Source of the DNA: Pelomyxa schiedti
Taxonomy: Eukaryota > Protista > Evosea
Reading direction: 5' to 3'
Assembly: GCA_020536535.1 (NCBI GenBank)
Contig: JAHLWZ010000830.1
Span: 30,854 to 94,853 of the forward strand
Length of the DNA: 64,000 nucleotides
The number at the start of each line of letters is the position of its first letter. Within the stretch, counting starts at the first letter, position 1. Of this stretch, positions 447 to 25,102 are shown piece by piece. Both the position numbers and the translations under genes were made by a program. Under the pieces are notes generated by a model that saw only the letters and a program-made list of their open reading frames with translations, searched no databases and was not told where the DNA came from.

Positions 447-864
447 TCTTTTTTTTCTTCCGTTCTTTTCCGTTGTTGTTTGCTGTTTGTTGGATTGGAG
501 CGAATCGGCCAATTTGGTTGTACACAGATGTTAGGGGAAGTAACTGTTTTCGGGTTAATCGATGGCTCTTCCTCTTGTGGAAGTGTTGAAGTGAAGCGAC
601 ATCATTTTGTTTCTCCGCCGTCAGATAACTTTGGGAAAGCCCACAGGCCAATTTGGGTGCCGGGAGCAGGCAACAGAAAAAGGAACCCGTTACAATGAGC
701 CGAAGTATGGGGATTGTCCTTCCTGCTCCCCTGGTCGGTGATGCCCCAGACTGCAATGCTGTAGGTTGTCATATGATAGGTTGTGGTGATGTGGGAACAG
801 TAAGTATCTCTAAGGAACAACTGCTGTGCCCTACCACCAATCAATATATTTGGTCTTCGACGAA

Positions 865-3757
865 ATGCTTGCTGCTGAGCAGGTGGCAGTGCCACCCCCA
901 GTGCAGTTGCCATTGACGCCACCCACAGTTGTTGCAACTGCCACTCCAACGAGCGACGCACAAGCGCGCTCCGACGGAGCCACTGCCTACGGCGGGAACG
1001 ACGACGGACCAGCAGCAACAGAGGAGCGCCCGTCCGACAACCAACGCGACGAGTTGCGGCAGTCCACGGGGCCGCCAGCGCCGCCGACCCCGATGCTTCT
1101 CGCGGCGCATTCTGAGCAGTCGCAGTACGCCGACGCGGCGCCGCAGATCGAGGCCGAGGGCGACGCAGCGGTGGCGGCTCGGCCGGAGGAGCTGGTGCCT
1201 GAAGGGGAGGTTCCAGCGGTGAACGGCGATGATGGGACGAATGTCGGTGGTGCGGACAGTCTGTACCCGCAACGTGAAGACGGTGACAATGATAATGATA
1301 ATGTCAATGACAATGACAATGGCAGTGCGAGTGACAGTAACGCGGGGAGCATTATGGGACAGCTCGAGGTGGGGCAGGCTGAGGAGGAGGAGGACGACTA
1401 CGACAACATCGTGGTCTACGACGACGACCCGGGGGCATCACTCATCACCCCCGCGGCGCACAGCATACCCGCAATAATCCAAAAGACCGCATTATGGGAA
1501 TCGCTGGACCTCGACCGCAGCGAAAGCGCAAAGTCGAGGGAAGAAAGCACATCCCGGGGCCGAATTTTTTGGAAGCAAACTGTTCTCAGGTGGGGGTGTG
1601 TTGTTCTCATAGCATTGGTTACGGCTGCTGTTTCATTTGCTCTGGATACAGGCTCGGGATGGCTGCGCAAATTAACAATGGAAATCCTCGCCAGAATCGG
1701 TGATGGGTCAACAAAGCAGCGGATTGGCTGTGGATTGGTCTATGTTGTGTTTGGAATCACCTACATTGGGGTCGCGGGTGTGATAGTGTTGCTGTTTGAC
1801 CCGACGATGCGGGGTGCTACCTCTGATGCTCTGTGCTACCTCAACGGCATCGTCGTGGAGAACACACTCAAGGTTAAGAAGCTGGTTGCACACAGTGTCG
1901 CCCTTCTGTTTGTCACAGCAAGTCCAATGTGTGTGGGAAAACAAGACCCGTCACTGGCAATAGGGGCCCAGATAGGATACGCATCCAGCAAAATTGGGAG
2001 TTTCCACAACTTCTTTGATGAATATGACGTTCGGGATATGGTGAGCCCTCATCAATTTCTTCTCCCGTCTCTTTACACTCTTATTCTTTCTTAATAGCTT
2101 CTCGCAGGTAAGTATTGGGCTTGGAGCAGGAGTGGCAACTTCATTTGGTGCCCCAGCTGGGGCCGTGCTCTTCACTCTTGAAAACGGATTTCACTTTACA
2201 ACAACCCTATTGCAACAGCTGCTATTATGCTGCATGCTTGCTTGTTTTGCCCTCAGCTTTTTACTTTCTGGTCACAAAGGAGGTCAGTTCTTAACGCTTA
2301 AAGACTATTTACAGACCCACACATAGATGAATGGGGTGCTTTTACAATGGACAGTCTTTGTCACTTCGGTCAGTTCACAAATTCAATATTCAACATCAAG
2401 CAATTGATTGCTTTTATGCTGATGGGTATCGTTGGGGGACTCCTTGGGGCCCTATTCAATTTTCTGCACTTGTTGACAATAAGATTCCGCAGAACTATTT
2501 TTAAGACCCCAAGAAAGAAGTTTTTCGAAATACTAGTTATCACATTGATGACAGGAATTATTGCTGTAGTAATGTCCTCCACGTGTGTTCGATTCCATCC
2601 CGATTACATTCTAAGATATCTCCAGGTTGTCAAATTGCGTTGAGTTGTCGTCCGAGTCTGAAGTTCCTGATGCCAACAATGTTGAACTTCAAACTATATT
2701 TTGCCCAACAGGGTACTACAATCAGATGGCGACTATGTTCATGAACAGCCAAGAGTCTGCTCTTCACTTTCTTCTTCACGAGAAGGAAGTAGTTGACAAA
2801 GGCTTACTGGCAGCATTTGCAGTCACTTATCTGGCACTGAGTGTCTACAGCATTGGCAGTGGAGTACCAAGTGGTTATTTCATGCCAACACTGCTACTTG
2901 GAGCTACAGTTGGAAGGTTAGTGGGCGAGATGGCCAAAACATCCCTATCGAAACTGGATATAGACCCCGGCATTATGGCATACATCGGGTCTGCAGCTGT
3001 CTTTGGTGGAGTCAGCAGAATGACAATATCTCTGGCAGTTATACTCAGCGAAGCAGTAAACCAAGCCACGTGGTCCCTCTTCCTCGCCATAGCACTTATA
3101 ATATCCCGTTGGATAGGAGATATGTTCAACCCCGGAATCGCCGCCATGGACTTCAAACTCACAGGACATCCAGTACTTCCCTGGAGTGCACCGCGGATGC
3201 TATACCGATACAGTGTAACTGATGCCATGCACTCTCCGGTTGTATCACTACCAAAGAGGGTCACTCCTCACCAAGTTCAGAGAATTCTGGACACGACAAC
3301 ACACAATGGATTCGCCGTAGTAGGCGATTGGAGAATAGAGGACATCGAGAAGGGAATGACACAGCCACTGTGCGGTGTAATCACCCGAAAACAACTGGAT
3401 TCACTCCTCAGAGCCCATCAATCACAATCACAGGAGTACATTGGCGAAGAAGCCGGCGACCAAGGCGACCCTGAACTTAGACAGTCAAATGACGGCATGA
3501 TTGACCTGGAACCTCATGCCAGGCACGTGATAACTGTGCCCAGCAGCGTGAGCTGTGCAAGAGCATTCAACATTTTCCGCAGCCTTGGGCTCAGGCACTT
3601 GATTGTTGTGGATGGGCACAGCCGGCCTGTGGGAATGATAACAAGAAAGGACTTGTTCTCCATCCACAGGGTTTTGGTCGCAAGAGAAAAACGGCTGCAG
3701 CACACATCAGTGAGTTCACGCATAAGGGCTGCACTATATGGAAGTACTGTGCACTAA
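865..3757 (+). CDS. CLC-family chloride channel/transporter (CLC-6/7-like) with two C-terminal CBS domains; multi-exon
   Basis: WESLD N-terminal motif, CYLNG, GVATSFGAPAGAVLF, GLLGALFN, GVPSGYFMP, GGVSRMTISLAVI, TTTHNGFAVV, FRSLGLRHLIVVD..PVGMITRKDL. Introns near 2041-2110, 2283-2335 and ~2583-2626. Start codon uncertain. Confidence 0.92.
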
Positions 3758-18999: not shown

Positions 19000-19202
19000 C
19001 TATCTTTGGTTGACCGGTTTTTTTTTGTTTTCTCTTTGTGTGTATCGATCGTAAAGGCGCGAGGGCCCCGGCTCTACGGGGTTATTTTTTTGTGTTTTTA
19101 CCTTCGTTCCTGTTTTGTCGTTGATTTTGTTGTGCGCTTCCCCGAAATGTTTTTTCTCCTTCCGTCGGGTGAACGTGAAACACTTAAAAACCGAGTGTTT
19201 CA

Positions 19203-22200
19203 ATGCCGTCGGCGACGTGCGTGTCGTTAATTGTCGTCGTGGTAGTGTGCGTGCTTTCGCGATTGGCGGCGGGATACCTAGAGAACTCTGCTGCGTTCCC
19301 ACAAGCAATTGTGGGTCTGTGGCCTGCCTCTTCTCCTCAGGCTCGCAACTCTGAGGCGAATCAGCAAGTTTTCGCTGTTGATTTCCGCGACGCACCTCTT
19401 CAGTCCCGATCGGCTTCTTTTGTTTCGGGAGGGAATGGCATCGAAAACATCACTTCCCTGCGTGCTCTTTGGAGGCGAGACAATATGGACACGTAGAGTT
19501 TTCCCTCTTGGTTTCTATGACGTTTTCAGTTCATTTCTATTGAAATGGGTTTTTTTTAAGTACTCCTGGATTCATACTTTCCTTCAAGATTGCTGAAGCA
19601 CTTTTTCCCTGGGGTTGCTGCAGATGATTTGGTGCTAAGAGATACGTCTCCTTGCTACATGTTTCTTGGTGAACAAGTCTGTGTTTACACACAATTCTAT
19701 CAGGGATATCCAACTATGGGTTTGAAATCAAAATCTTCTTACAAACGTGACTGAAATGTTTAATAACTCAAACAGGACATCAGTTGAAAGTTTCTTTTGA
19801 CTCTGAGGAGAGGATAACAAGGGCTTCTGGCACAATAATCTCAAAGCGGTTTGTTTTCCTTTCCCCACTAATACATACTTATTGTATAAAGCTCGAGGCT
19901 ACCGAGTGTTCCCTCTGATTCTTATAATAAAGCCTTGAATACTTGCCTAGCAATTGGGCATTTATGCCCTAATATGGCATCTGTTACAGGTTTGAGGGAT
20001 GTGGTTTTCCCTGACCAATGTTATTTTCACAGGAGCAAACATTGTAGTATATAGTTTTGATTCTGATCCTATGATACTAGCATGGAAAATATTATGTCGA
20101 AGACAGTATGTTTGCTTTTCCTAAAAAGACATCTTTTTACTTTTTCAGTTATTTCTATGTTGATTCTGCGAGTTCCAACCTCATCTCAGTTCACCCACAA
20201 CACAGGCACGCTGAAGAAAGGTTTTTTTGTCACTTTCCTATACTTTTAATAAGTTCACAGGTTTCTGTGGGTAGGTGATACTTTAGTGTGGAAGGAGGGA
20301 GATCCTGACTCAGGTGACCAAGATATTGAGGATTACCTCAATGCCACTTCCGCGTTTTATACAACCTTTGAAAATATGATTGGGTGGCTCTCGTTTGATG
20401 GGAAAGGTACCTTAGAATCCTCGTATTAGAACTTACCAGAACTTCTATTAAGACTCCCCACTCATTGCCCATATTCACTACCAAGATACCTTTGAGCAGA
20501 TATGCCCAAATGCGGCATACAATGGAGTAAATAATGAGTTTCTCTTCTGTAGTGGAATGACTTTTTGGGATGGTAACTTTTTTTTAAAACATCCATTTCT
20601 ATCAACTGTCCTTTAGTATCACTTCATGAGGAGGGGCATGCATTTACCCACTTTACCGATGACACTGGAATCTATGAAGACCCCTCTGCAATCAACGAAT
20701 CTTGGTCTGATATAAACGAAGAAGCTCTTGCAATAATGTGGAACATGCCATGTGCGATTGTCTTCATTGTACTAATATAATATAATATAATATAATATCA
20801 TTTAGGGACTCTGGGAATGCGTAGCAGCAACAGGTCATGTGTTTCAGACTCAACTCATCAACGCTGGATTACTTGGTTAGCTGTAGGTACCACGCCATCC
20901 AGCATAAAACTTTATTGAGCTAATAATTACAAGTCTCTGGCAGCCGAGACCTTTATAACCCTAATTGTACATATAATACTGCAGCAGCTAAGGACTGCCT
21001 TTGTTCCTTTGTGGACGCTTCCGAATCTCATGCAAATTCGGGTTTATTGATTCCTTTTTCCAGCTTCTTGACACTGTTCAGGTGTTGTAGGAATTGTATT
21101 TGCTATCACCTGTGACGGTGGGGAGTTGAATGGCGAGTATTTTCCTGGAATAGGAATACTGAAGGTGCCCCTATTTTACGTGTTTACTTTTTTTCTTTTA
21201 ACCTCACGAAAGACATGGTGGATATTTCTTACCTCAAAAATGAGTCACCAAACAGCCGATACTCGGTTTTATCAGCTGGCTGACTTTTTAGCTTTGGCTT
21301 GCCACGGACTCATTGGCAAAAAACTTGTTGACCATTTGGGTTATGAAACGGAGGAATCTATAACTTCAGATGACTGTGACACACTTGGTGAGTACCAGTG
21401 TGATACTTTTGTTCTAATATTTTTCCAGTTCGTCTCACTGATACTTTGGGCTTGAGGGAAACACCATGTCAGTATATGTCCATAAACCCGAATTCCTAAA
21501 TTGGTGCAGGTACATCATACCAGTACCTTCTTGCGTTCCCTCGGTATCTTCCTCTAACAGGGGGTAAATTCAATGTGGAAACAAGTAGTACACAGTGCGG
21601 GGCAACACAATACCTCAGTGTATCACTTCTTTTTTTTGACATGACGAATAATATTTCCACCCTCAGATTCATATTGGTTCTGAAACATGGGTTTTTTCTG
21701 GAACTCCTATTGCAACATCCACGTACACCCCATCATGGAGCTATTTGACACAGTTCACGCTCCCAGGTATTATAGGCTTCCTCTGTTTACAGTTCTCAAT
21801 CTTGACCAGGCTTGTCCATATTTGATTCGAATCGAGTAATATCTTACAACCTGAGTTGTGATGCGTCATTTACCATAACCCCTACGGATTCCCTGAATTC
21901 TCAAGGAAAAACAGTCACCAGGAAAATTGTTTTTTATGGTACCAGTCTCTGTCTCAAAGAAACCCTCTCAGAAGTTCCTTTAATAATTAACAACAAGAAA
22001 AGATCCCCCCTTTTTAACAGGCCTGTCACCCGTATCCGGAGTTGAAAATGATATAGTTGTTGTAACAGGAGACAAATTCCAACAGTTTTCTGGTCCCTGT
22101 GCTGGTCTAGTATTCTACTATTATTCATGCCTGTCTTGTACGTACCCATTTCTGTTTCGATTTTTTTCCAAATAATTTGTACAACATTTCAACAGGTAAA

Positions 22201-22419
22201 TTTGGAAGCACTATCACCGGCGCAGTGTTTATAGACAACAGCACAATTTTGTGCCAAGTGCCAGCTGGTGAAGGAGAGGTATCATTTGAAGTCAGCCTCA
22301 ATGCGCAAGATTTTACCGACTCTGGGCTAACTTTCACATACTCAAGCCCAGCACACACACTCCAAGCAACATCGTTTCTACTCACCGCGATCACCATTGC
22401 ACTGCTTATCACAATGTAA
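19203..22419 (+). CDS. Thermolysin-like M4 zinc metallopeptidase with signal peptide, FTP-type propeptide, C-terminal IPT/TIG domain and hydrophobic tail; many introns
   Basis: Signal MPSATCVSLIVVVVVCVLSRLAAG; YTQFYQGYPTMG (FTP-like, ~19685-19720); SFDGK..HIHY..NAAYNG; HEEGH at 20625-20639; SAINESWSDI (~20685-20714); HANSG (~21029); GGELNGEYFPGIGILK; CQVPAGEGEVSFEVSLNAQDF (IPT); C-terminal FLLTAITIALLITM. Confidence 0.85.
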
Positions 22420-22494
22420 AAAAAACCCAGAGAGTTTTTTTTTTGTTTTTGCAGGTAGGAAATAACACAATGGGTAATTTGTGGGTGTAGAGGA

Positions 22495-22873
22495 TTAGAG
22501 CCTAATGTGCCTGGACGCCATCCTCATGCTTACGTGGGTGTTTCTGGAGAACCTCGTCATGGGGGTACGGTGGGCTCTTGCTGCCATTCCGCGTGCCAAC
22601 CTGGCTTTACCCTTGAGACTCCATCGCCTCTGAGGCATTCGAGCCTGCCGGGTTGCGAAGCCTTTTGCGGACTGCCTCATAACCCTGGGTCGGATTTGAC
22701 GGGTCGCATGTCGGTCGAGGCGAGATTCAACCTGTGTGTTGTTAGGCAAAGTAAATTTACTAGAGCGAGTGAAGAAACAAAAAAAGGAGGTGCGTCGTTT
22801 GTTGTCTGGATGGTACCTCGGTAACAAGGAGTAGAACAATAACGACTAAGAGGAGAATATACAAAGCTTGCAT
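22495..22873 (-). CDS. Small secreted, highly cationic (Arg-rich) peptide precursor, 97 aa, 2 exons
   Basis: Exon 1 22873-22817 MQALYILLLVVIVLLLVTE; 85-nt phase-0 intron GTACCA..CTAAC..CAG (22816-22732); exon 2 22731-22495 VESRLDRHATRQIRPR...ASRHIRL*. Confidence 0.7.
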
Positions 22874-23635
22874 AGTCCAGGTTTCCTTCGCTTGTTGTGG
22901 TGTGTTTGCTTGTTTTTTTTTTTTTTTTTTTTTTTTTGTTTTGAACTTGTTGAGCTTTGTGCCTGTTTTCTGAAGCCATTTATAGGGCAACGCGTTATTG
23001 AGAAAGTTCTTTACAAAGAACAAATTTTACCCTCGGGGCAGCAGAAAACAGGTCCCAGAAACGACTTCCACCATCACTTATTGGACGTTTCAGTCAAAAA
23101 ACGGCATAATGAATGAAAAATAAAAACAACCAACAAAAAACAAGTTTATCCACTGGGCGCACCCAGTGCATTTCGTTTGATTTTGATGATAGTTTTCGTT
23201 TTTTGTTTGTGTGGCTGGTTTTTGACTGAAACGTCCAATAGTTGCAATCAACAAGTGCGGAAGTGCACACCACATCAACAACATCAACAGGACTTCCTGT
23301 GATCAACTGATCACCCCTTAGAAGAGAATGTCGGTTAACATTGGCATTAGAAGAGATCACAAGGAAGTCAGGCCTTCCAAATGGCAGATGGACTCGGGTG
23401 TGTGCAATTGTTCTCAACTGCAAAATGGAAAAACTCTAAGAGAAAACGTGCTGGCTGGTGCCCTCCAACAACATCCAGGTGTCGGAATCTTATCTCTAAG
23501 CAATTGCCCCTCTTGTGCCGGGGTATTTTTGGAGCATAAAAACTGTCGCTCTTACGCAAGAAACAAAAACAAACCAAGCCGCACAACCGACGTTACGCCT
23601 CCCATAGACAAACAACACCAAATAATACCGACAAC

Positions 23636-25102
23636 ATGCAACAACCAACACAGCCGCAACCCGGTATGATGGGACAACCAGGACAACCCGGCCAACCAGG
23701 GATGATGCCTACGCAGCCCGGTATGATGGGCCAGCCAGGACAACCAGGAATGATGGGACAACCGGGTATGATGCCGCAACAACCAGGACAACCTGGCCAA
23801 CCAGGGATGCTGCAGCCAGGGCAACCCGGCATGCAGCCCGGAATGATGGGACAGCCCGGGCAACCCGGCATGCAGCCGGGCCAACCAGGCCAGCCGGGTA
23901 TGCAACCAGGAATGATGGGACAACCAGGGATGCAGCCCGGGCAACCAGGAATGCAACCAGGACAGCCGGGTATGCAGCCAGGAATGATGGGACAGCCGGG
24001 TATGCAACCAGGAATGCAGCCCGGAATGATGGGACAGCCAGGACAACCGGGACAGCCGGGAATGCAGCCGGGACAACCAGGGATGCAGCCCGGAATGATG
24101 GGGCAGCCAGGACAACCGGGAATGCAGCCAGGGATGCAGCCGGGTCAAATGCAACCAGGAGCTCAACCAGGTCAACCCCAACCGGGCCAAATGCAGCCAG
24201 GAGCTCAACCAGGCCAACCAGGAATGCAACCAGGTCAGTCGGGAATGATGCAGCCCGGCCAAATGCAGCCCGGCCAAATGCAGCCCGGCCAAATGCAGCC
24301 CGGCCAAATGCAGCCCGGCCAAATGCAGCCCGGCCAAATGCAGCCTGGAATGCAACCCGGCCAAGTGCAACCAGGGATGCAACAGCCAGGACAGAAGCCA
24401 CCAACACCAGGGCAGCCTCAACCGGGAATGCAACAGCCAGGAATGCAACCCCAGCCTGGAATGCAGCAACCCGGAATGGGTGGTTCTGGTGTAGCTCTTC
24501 AGCTAGGAATGTCTCCACAGCCGGGAATGCAACCTGGAATGCAGCCATCTATGGGAGGCTCTGGAGTACCTCTTCAAACTGGATCTCAGCCGGGTATGGG
24601 AATGCAGCCAGGAATGGGGATGCAACCGGGCATGGGAATGCAGCCCGGTATGGGCATGCAGCCGGGAATGGGAATGCAGCCTGGTATGGGAATGCAACCC
24701 GGGATGGGGATGCAACCAGGTATGGGAATGCAACCAGGAATGGGAATGCAGCCTGGAATGAGCATGGGGATGCAGCCTGGTATGGGAATGCAACCTGGTA
24801 TGGGCATGCAACCAGGAATGGGAATGCAGCCTGGTATGGGGATGCAGCCGGGAATGGGAATGCAACCAGGAATGAGCATGGGGATGCAGCCGGGAATGGG
24901 AATGCAGCCTGGTATGGGAATGGGAATGGGCATGGGCATGCAGCCAGGAATGGGAATGCAACCCGGAATGGGAATGCCAGGCATGGGAATGCAACCAGGG
25001 ATGGGAATGCCAGGAATGGGAATGGGATACCCGCAAGGAGGACCGTATGTTCCTTTACTTTTCATGTTCAAACACTAACGTTGCCCCTCACAGATACTGG
25101 TG
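23636..25102 (+). CDS. Gln/Pro/Gly/Met-rich tandem-repeat low-complexity protein
   Basis: 480-codon ORF of [15 protein letters not shown] units with synonymous third-position variation. Terminal intron gtatgt(~25045)..cacag gives ...GGPYW*. An upstream exon (~23328-23522) is possible. Confidence 0.8.

Follow-up and report, generated by a model that had tools for sequence, protein, structure and literature searches.

A spliced minus-strand gene of Pelomyxa schiedti predicted to encode an exported, arginine-rich and cysteine-free peptide

Results

A two-exon gene on the minus strand

In the window, by which we mean the whole 64,000-nucleotide stretch of P. schiedti DNA that was analysed, a small gene with two coding exons is transcribed from the minus strand and spliced (Table 1). 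A preliminary description of the same DNA had proposed it as a gene missed by the list of open reading frames and interrupted by a phase-0 intron of 85 nt, and the strand, the intron and its splice sites all proved exact to the base. The mechanical list contains the two unspliced pieces alone (22495-22839 and 22760-23023), and the unspliced frame reaches a stop codon within the intron. RNA contigs from two single-cell runs, X1 and X2, omit precisely these 85 nt, joining 22731 to 22817, and are 100% identical to the genome elsewhere in the gene; inspection of RNA across the 22816/22732 junction, recommended in the preliminary description, was thus positive in two runs. As reported by the placement, the junction reads 22729->22815 with CT..AC on the plus strand; moving the cut by +2 puts the exon ends at 22817 and 22731, and the intron, read from the minus strand, is then of the GT..AG type.

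The RNA data comprised four single-cell runs (X1-X4) from one sample of one study, labelled 'protist metagenome', and were examined as assembled contigs placed on window positions 19200-23650. In such contigs, derived from one sample, strand is taken from intron polarity, and transcript ends and expression level are not readable from them. Smart-seq2 and Nextera single-cell transcriptomes were produced in the P. schiedti genome project (PMC8887013), and sequences of the Nextera adapter and the template-switch oligonucleotide are present here as loose contig ends. Since the locus is single copy and intron-bearing in the assembly of 52,367,397 bases (5337 contigs), the joined, intron-less form must be RNA and not genomic DNA. 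In the neighbouring plus-strand gene, the same runs confirmed 13 introns, all GT..AG and 40-66 nt long, and the RNA data can therefore be regarded as valid; the GTACC donor found in our gene occurs in 3 of those 13 introns.

Over the gene, RNA contigs span 22425-22883 at 100% identity, the X1 contig extending to 22883, where it passes into Nextera adapter. RNA coverage in the contigs of the four runs is zero between 22925 and 23520, and a T/A run at 22898-22950 was skipped in placement. Contig assembly halts at a run of 25 A residues 40 nt ahead of the ATG. The stretch containing this run and a TATAAA box is likely to be the promoter or 5' leader of the gene, as judged from its sequence; A-rich tracts and TATA-like boxes are found also upstream of the paralogues described below. 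Contig word depth was 120-370 over this gene vs 4-13 for the neighbour, which hints at high expression of the arginine-rich peptide gene and no more, as contig depth cannot rank genes.

Table 1. Parts of the arginine-rich peptide gene, in window coordinates
Feature	Position	Strand	Remarks
Upstream region with A25 run (22913-22937) and TATAAA (22979-22984)	22913-22984	-	sequence only
5' UTR, minimum extent	22874-22883	-	RNA-backed; real start lies more upstream, at most at about 22950
Start codon ATG	22873-22871	-	first ATG within the RNA-supported span
Exon 1, coding	22817-22873	-	19 codons, hydrophobic leader; apolar run, residues 3-17
Intron	22732-22816	-	85 nt, phase 0; GTACCA donor, CTAAC, CAG acceptor
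Exon 2, coding	22495-22731	-	78 codons (22731-22498) and TAA (22497-22495); contigs from 4 of 4 runs
Predicted mature peptide	22498-22722	-	75 residues; cleavage after V-E-S predicted
Two degenerate 17-residue repeats, each xATRQxR...KG	22609-22710	-	9 of 17 residues identical
3' UTR, RNA-backed extent	22425-22494	-	X2 contig to 22425, X3 to 22446, X4 to 22472

Several features of the neighbourhood deserve separate mention. A convergent plus-strand gene for an M4 protease has its stop codon at 22417-22419, a few bases from the RNA end at 22425, and the 3' UTRs of the two genes may overlap. Two splice forms of one intron of the protease gene were seen at 21937-22005 (plus strand): X1 and X2 join 21937->22002 (GT..AG), and X3 joins 21938->22005, which reads GT..AT, with three other letters between. 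On the other side, an RNA-silent spacer separates our gene from a divergent gene for a QPGM-repeat protein and contains, at 23079-23240, an imperfect palindrome with 79-nt arms (72% complementary) and a 4-nt loop. For the QPGM-repeat gene (23612-25078, plus strand; ATG at 23636), the 5' end of the mRNA is indicated at 23612 by a loose contig end of template-switch oligonucleotide; the gene's product of 480 aa consists almost wholly of Q/P/G/M repeats (Pfam Pericardin_rpt, E=1.4e-22).

Coding capacity and homology searches

The spliced RNA of 374 nt contains a single long reading frame, which has 97 codons, opens at the first AUG and occupies 79% of the molecule; an ATG-to-stop frame of at least 97 codons was present in 0.78% of 5000 dinucleotide shuffles of this RNA. 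The echo HATRQIR/FATRQAR, pointed out in the preliminary description, turned out to belong to a 17-residue repeat whose identity (9/17) was matched by 7 of 2000 composition shuffles. At the DNA level the two units share 20 of 51 nt, and seven of the nine shared residues are specified by different codons. Retention of the repeat in amino acids and not in nucleotides suggests selection on the peptide. The codon-usage likelihood was uninformative, codon usage in this genome being nearly flat, and the gene's frame scored no better than one antisense frame. We consider it very probable that the locus is a real protein-coding gene. A recount of the 75 residues past V-E-S returned the composition given earlier, namely 19 Arg, 3 Lys, 4 His, 1 Asp and 0 Cys, with a net charge of ~+21.

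Exon 2 served as the query in the searches, and the joined two-exon product was used for the composition counts and the ORF-length statistic only. No match to exon 2 was found in a word-indexed set of 5.8 billion proteins, in Pfam, in the ESM Atlas or in JGI metagenome contigs, and PDB sequences contained no homologue (best E=0.31). The sole match in a representative set of 1.84 billion proteins, P0001 (563 aa), was rejected as repeat inflation, this being a translation of tandem repeats that matched in 10 stretches. Within the P. schiedti genome, exon 2 recovered itself alone, both as DNA and as protein. Homologues outside P. schiedti, which a conservation test across species would require, were found in none of the searched collections.

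The preliminary description had named a match to a structured non-coding RNA or a transposon as evidence against its proposal. None emerged: Rfam gave nothing at the gathering threshold, its single sub-threshold match (SAM-IV, 22.3 of 38 bits) being a chance one, and the locus occurs once in the genome. Three other candidates were discarded. A gene on the plus strand, suggested by an antisense reading frame of 105 aa (22507-22824), would require a CT..AC intron; no Pfam match speaks for L34 or another small ribosomal protein; and against a snoRNA hosted by the intron stand the lack of box motifs when its sequence was read and the lack of any Rfam match.

A family of five genes sharing a leader cassette

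The gene had been presented as a lone one. Instead, it seems to be the most divergent of five paralogues restricted, as far as known, to P. schiedti. The leader pattern M-x-x-[LI]-Y-[IV]-L-x-L-V has four matches in the genome (this gene and the relatives C1619, C476 and C277) vs none in the control, and one mismatch or a related pattern adds a fifth gene, C320, together with a redundant fragment, C4921. With one mismatch allowed, 16 matches were observed vs 10 in the control; pattern matches in C866, C173 and C315 were inspected and rejected as non-members, and the remaining one-mismatch matches, uninspected, were taken as noise from the control count. In C320 the leader exon occurs twice, flanking a run of N (L014 1501-1800), with a further copy at the terminus of the 543-base contig C4921 (L023 459-543). 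These copies most likely reflect redundancy of the assembly and not extra genes.

RNA evidence concerns the locus in the window, and the four relatives, with products of 107 (C476), 97 (C277), 101 (C1619) and 117 (C320) aa, were read from genome sequence. All five genes, which lie on five contigs and have A/C-rich 5' UTRs, consist of two coding exons, with 18-19 leader codons, an apolar run of 14-15 residues, and a phase-0 intron with a GTA donor, placed after codon 19 in our gene and, identically, in C320, and after codon 18 in C476, C277 and C1619. The second exon of family members begins with (E)V-D/E-A/S-R (A-D-A-R-L in C1619), so that the junction has the form V/A-D/E-A/S followed by R: V-E-S-R in our gene, and V-D-A-R, V-D-A-S-R and A-D-A-R in the relatives. 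All five bodies are Cys-free, have 78-98 residues and a net charge of +9 to +24, and each is built from a repeat peculiar to it, at offsets of 11-20 residues. Their composition ranges from Arg-rich to Lys/Trp/His-rich. The leader peptide is held in the four paralogues despite 2-5 synonymous changes per pair.

Two of the relatives, C476 and C1619, are segmental duplicates as judged from their alignment: the end of the 5' UTR, the leader exon, the TTGTCAATAAA element of the 3' UTR and a downstream primase gene align well, and the bodies are unalignable. Conserved flanks combined with unalignable bodies point to a conserved export cassette joined to bodies of very fast turnover. The downstream gene in both cases is a paralogue of the DNA primase large subunit (Pfam PF04104, E=3.3e-8), located at L003 1812-2699 (plus strand) for C1619 and at L008 ~770-1100 (minus strand) for C476. 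Searches of the P. schiedti genome with three other family bodies each recovered the query alone, no homologue of the C320 body was found, and the strict leader pattern had no match in metagenome contigs. By these searches, the family is known only from P. schiedti.

A separate problem is the membership of our gene in this family. Its leader, with Ala in place of Pro at position 3, shares 6-8 of 18 residues with the relatives vs 13-15 common within the trio of C476, C277 and C1619, and the gene's intron is the longest (85 nt vs 40-64). As nucleotide-level similarity of its leader to the relatives is not significant, with noisy segment-wise identity, the assignment rests on the protein pattern, the gene layout and one match with E=0.001. 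The score of leader residue order was reached in 0 of 20000 shuffles. The body aligns with that of C320 in BLASTP (E=0.001, 26% over 61 ungapped residues) and, with E=0.5, shares a collinear start with that of C476, both having V-x-x-R at residues 1-4 and RQI at 11-13; no alignment was obtained with C277. Motifs of the RQ type occur as ATRQ in our gene and C277, and as TARQ/SRQ in C320. Searches started from the other bodies never recovered ours. On this sequence evidence, we regard it as highly likely that the gene is a member of the five-gene family, and its most divergent one.

Predicted export and properties of the peptide

With Val at -3 and Ser at -1, the site conforms to the signal-peptidase rule, and V/A-x-A/S is retained there in the paralogues. 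At 15 residues, the apolar run has a length typical of cleaved signals and would be short if it had to span a membrane. Acidic residues number three in the whole protein, and all of them fall within seven positions after this run. A basic n-region is missing from the leader, which appears to be normal in this organism, because the leader of the neighbouring M4 protease, a secretory-type protein, is likewise devoid of one. Cleavage after V-E-S had been proposed in the preliminary description, and conservation of the junction behind the apolar run in four paralogues strengthens that part of the proposal; export itself keeps the status of a prediction. From these rule-based features, export of the 75-residue peptide and its cleavage after V-E-S are predicted with reasonable confidence.

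No signal of an amphipathic helix rose above shuffles (maximum helical hydrophobic moment of 0.69 vs 0.56+-0.10, p about 0.11-0.12), and a single-sequence AF2 model, with a mean pLDDT of 64.5, contained three short helices and no compact fold. Amphipathicity is not obligatory for non-lytic peptides rich in Arg or Pro. Because neither an amphipathic signal nor a confident fold was obtained, a mode of action based on polyanion binding would fit the modelled peptide better than that of a classic pore-forming helix.

Discussion

The reading that we favour, and to which we would give an even chance of being correct, is that the gene encodes a secreted, largely unstructured polycation which, like host-defence peptides, attaches to nucleic acids or to the polyanionic surfaces of microbes. 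In the proposed mechanism, the apolar leader would bring the nascent chain into the endoplasmic reticulum, and the acidic residues just past it would hold the N-in/C-out orientation. Signal peptidase would then cut past V-E-S, releasing a Cys-free, largely unstructured peptide of 75 residues and a charge of ~+21, which would follow the secretory or endolysosomal route. Electrostatic binding to bacterial or archaeal envelopes and to nucleic acids might make it a non-amphipathic, Arg-rich peptide of the host-defence type, directed at prey or at resident microbes. Of the criteria for cationic host-defence peptides, small size and net positive charge are found here (75 residues, 19 R + 3 K - 1 D), and amphipathicity is absent. 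P. schiedti is probably bacterivorous, it houses Ca. Vesiculincola in vacuoles and Ca. Syntrophus in the cytosol, in addition to a methanogen, and its survival depends on these bacterial and archaeal partners (PMC10579272). Thus, targets that can be reached by the secretory route exist. By analogy, a microbe-directed function may be put forward as a candidate role of the arginine-rich peptide, though a tentative one.

Among alternative explanations, the one that survives best, although we consider it unlikely, also assumes export, with the product acting not as a weapon but as a coat protein or a protein condensing polyanions in secretory-vesicle contents, the glycocalyx, the cyst wall, polyphosphate or extracellular DNA. 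The diversity of the family would then result from drift of low-complexity repeats. Extreme hydrophilic charge with neither amphipathicity nor a fold would suit such a protein, a tandem repeat peculiar to every family body is what slippage-driven drift predicts, and the hint from contig depth would agree with a bulk component. However, complete replacement of the body between recent segmental duplicates whose flanks are kept resembles diversifying pressure more than neutral drift, and a structural role usually fixes composition or the type of repeat, whereas these bodies vary from Arg-rich to Lys/Trp/His-rich.

It might also be assumed that the leader is an uncleaved signal anchor, in which case the product would be a small single-pass membrane protein whose cytosolic Arg-rich tail binds RNA, ribosomes or acidic lipids. 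The positive-inside rule would favour a cytosolic tail, as basic residues are missing ahead of the apolar run and the positive charge after it is huge, and the TRQAR...RRW segment is reminiscent of arginine-rich RNA-binding motifs. Nevertheless, the apolar run throughout the family is short for a membrane span, the first 15 residues past it are about neutral, and the two or three acidic residues together with small residues at -3 and -1, conserved in the family right after the run, make up the layout of a cleaved signal rather than that of a stop-transfer anchor. We therefore find the signal anchor quite improbable. Least credible of all, to the point of being nearly negligible, is a spliced non-coding RNA with the reading frame as an untranslated by-product: the lack of homologues and of protein-level evidence and a codon score not exceeding that of one antisense frame would permit it, but it has to face a reading frame of improbable length (p=0.008) that opens with the first AUG and takes up most of the RNA, a phase-0 intron that keeps the frame, a leader peptide preserved in the paralogues through synonymous changes, an internal repeat kept in amino acids and not in nucleotides, and no Rfam family.

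If the product is indeed a secreted polycation, its closest counterparts should be sought among host-defence peptides. Known amoebal antibacterial effectors are folded and disulfide-bonded, as are the saposin-like pore formers and lysozymes. Amoebapores and other saposin-like proteins resemble the P. schiedti peptide, whose export is predicted, in being small secreted or vesicular proteins of amoebae thought to target bacteria; unlike them, it has none of the six cysteines that the saposin fold requires. A saposin-like or amoebapore identity was rejected on this ground and on the lack of a Pfam or PDB match. In gene architecture, a parallel is offered by amphibian genes of the preprodermaseptin type, in which a conserved 'secretory cassette' exon is followed by a hypervariable one that encodes the mature peptide. 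Precursors in frogs possess an acidic propiece and are processed at a Lys-Arg site to give amphipathic helices 10-50 residues long, whereas in the P. schiedti gene there is no acidic propiece, no Lys-Arg site and no amphipathicity.

Legume NCR peptides have a conserved signal and a divergent mature part, and together with the aphid BCR peptides they form expanded families in which a conserved signal peptide precedes short, divergent, cationic mature parts delivered by the secretory route (PMC12176269). Their hosts, like P. schiedti, harbour intracellular prokaryotes. The differences are substantial: NCR and BCR peptides have 4-6 conserved cysteines in 35-55 residues, the P. schiedti peptide has none in 75 and bears no sequence relation to them, and symbiont targeting, seen for NCR/BCR, is hypothetical here (PMC12176269). 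Antimicrobial peptide families of Hydra are likewise fast-evolving and genus-restricted, with very abundant mRNA, and the arminins and periculins share with the present family restricted, fast-evolving paralogues, a strongly cationic part and a signal peptide, the latter being predicted in our case (PMC10945409). The hint from contig depth at our locus would recall the mRNA abundance seen in Hydra. The Hydra peptides differ in the bipartite anionic/cationic precursor, in frequent Cys patterns and in tandem gene clusters; in P. schiedti the acidic residues after the leader number just three, and each of the five genes is on a contig of its own. The kind of family, secreted and cationic with a conserved signal and a variable body, is thus known in animals and plants. 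We found no description of it for amoebae, nor of a Cys-free Arg-rich form, and a literature search returned no paper connecting Pelomyxa with antimicrobial peptides.

The combination of a conserved export cassette with fast-turnover bodies fits the design of host-defence peptides, and a family of linear, Cys-free polycations would carry this design, as seen in animals and plants, into an amoebozoan. The case also illustrates how small spliced genes slip past ORF-based views; both exon 2 and the C320 body are absent from the large protein collections searched. A bolder extension, which seems distinctly unlikely, is that the five peptides manage the obligate prokaryotic consortium: sent by the secretory pathway into the Ca. 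Vesiculincola vacuoles, or to other cells that are resident or have been ingested, they would hold these microbes in check or reprogramme them. If true, this would mean symbiont control resembling that by NCR and BCR peptides, evolved independently in Amoebozoa and based on Cys-free, Arg-rich chemistry. Since P. schiedti depends on its partners, the peptides may serve as concrete, synthesisable candidates for the control of intracellular prokaryotes by a protist.
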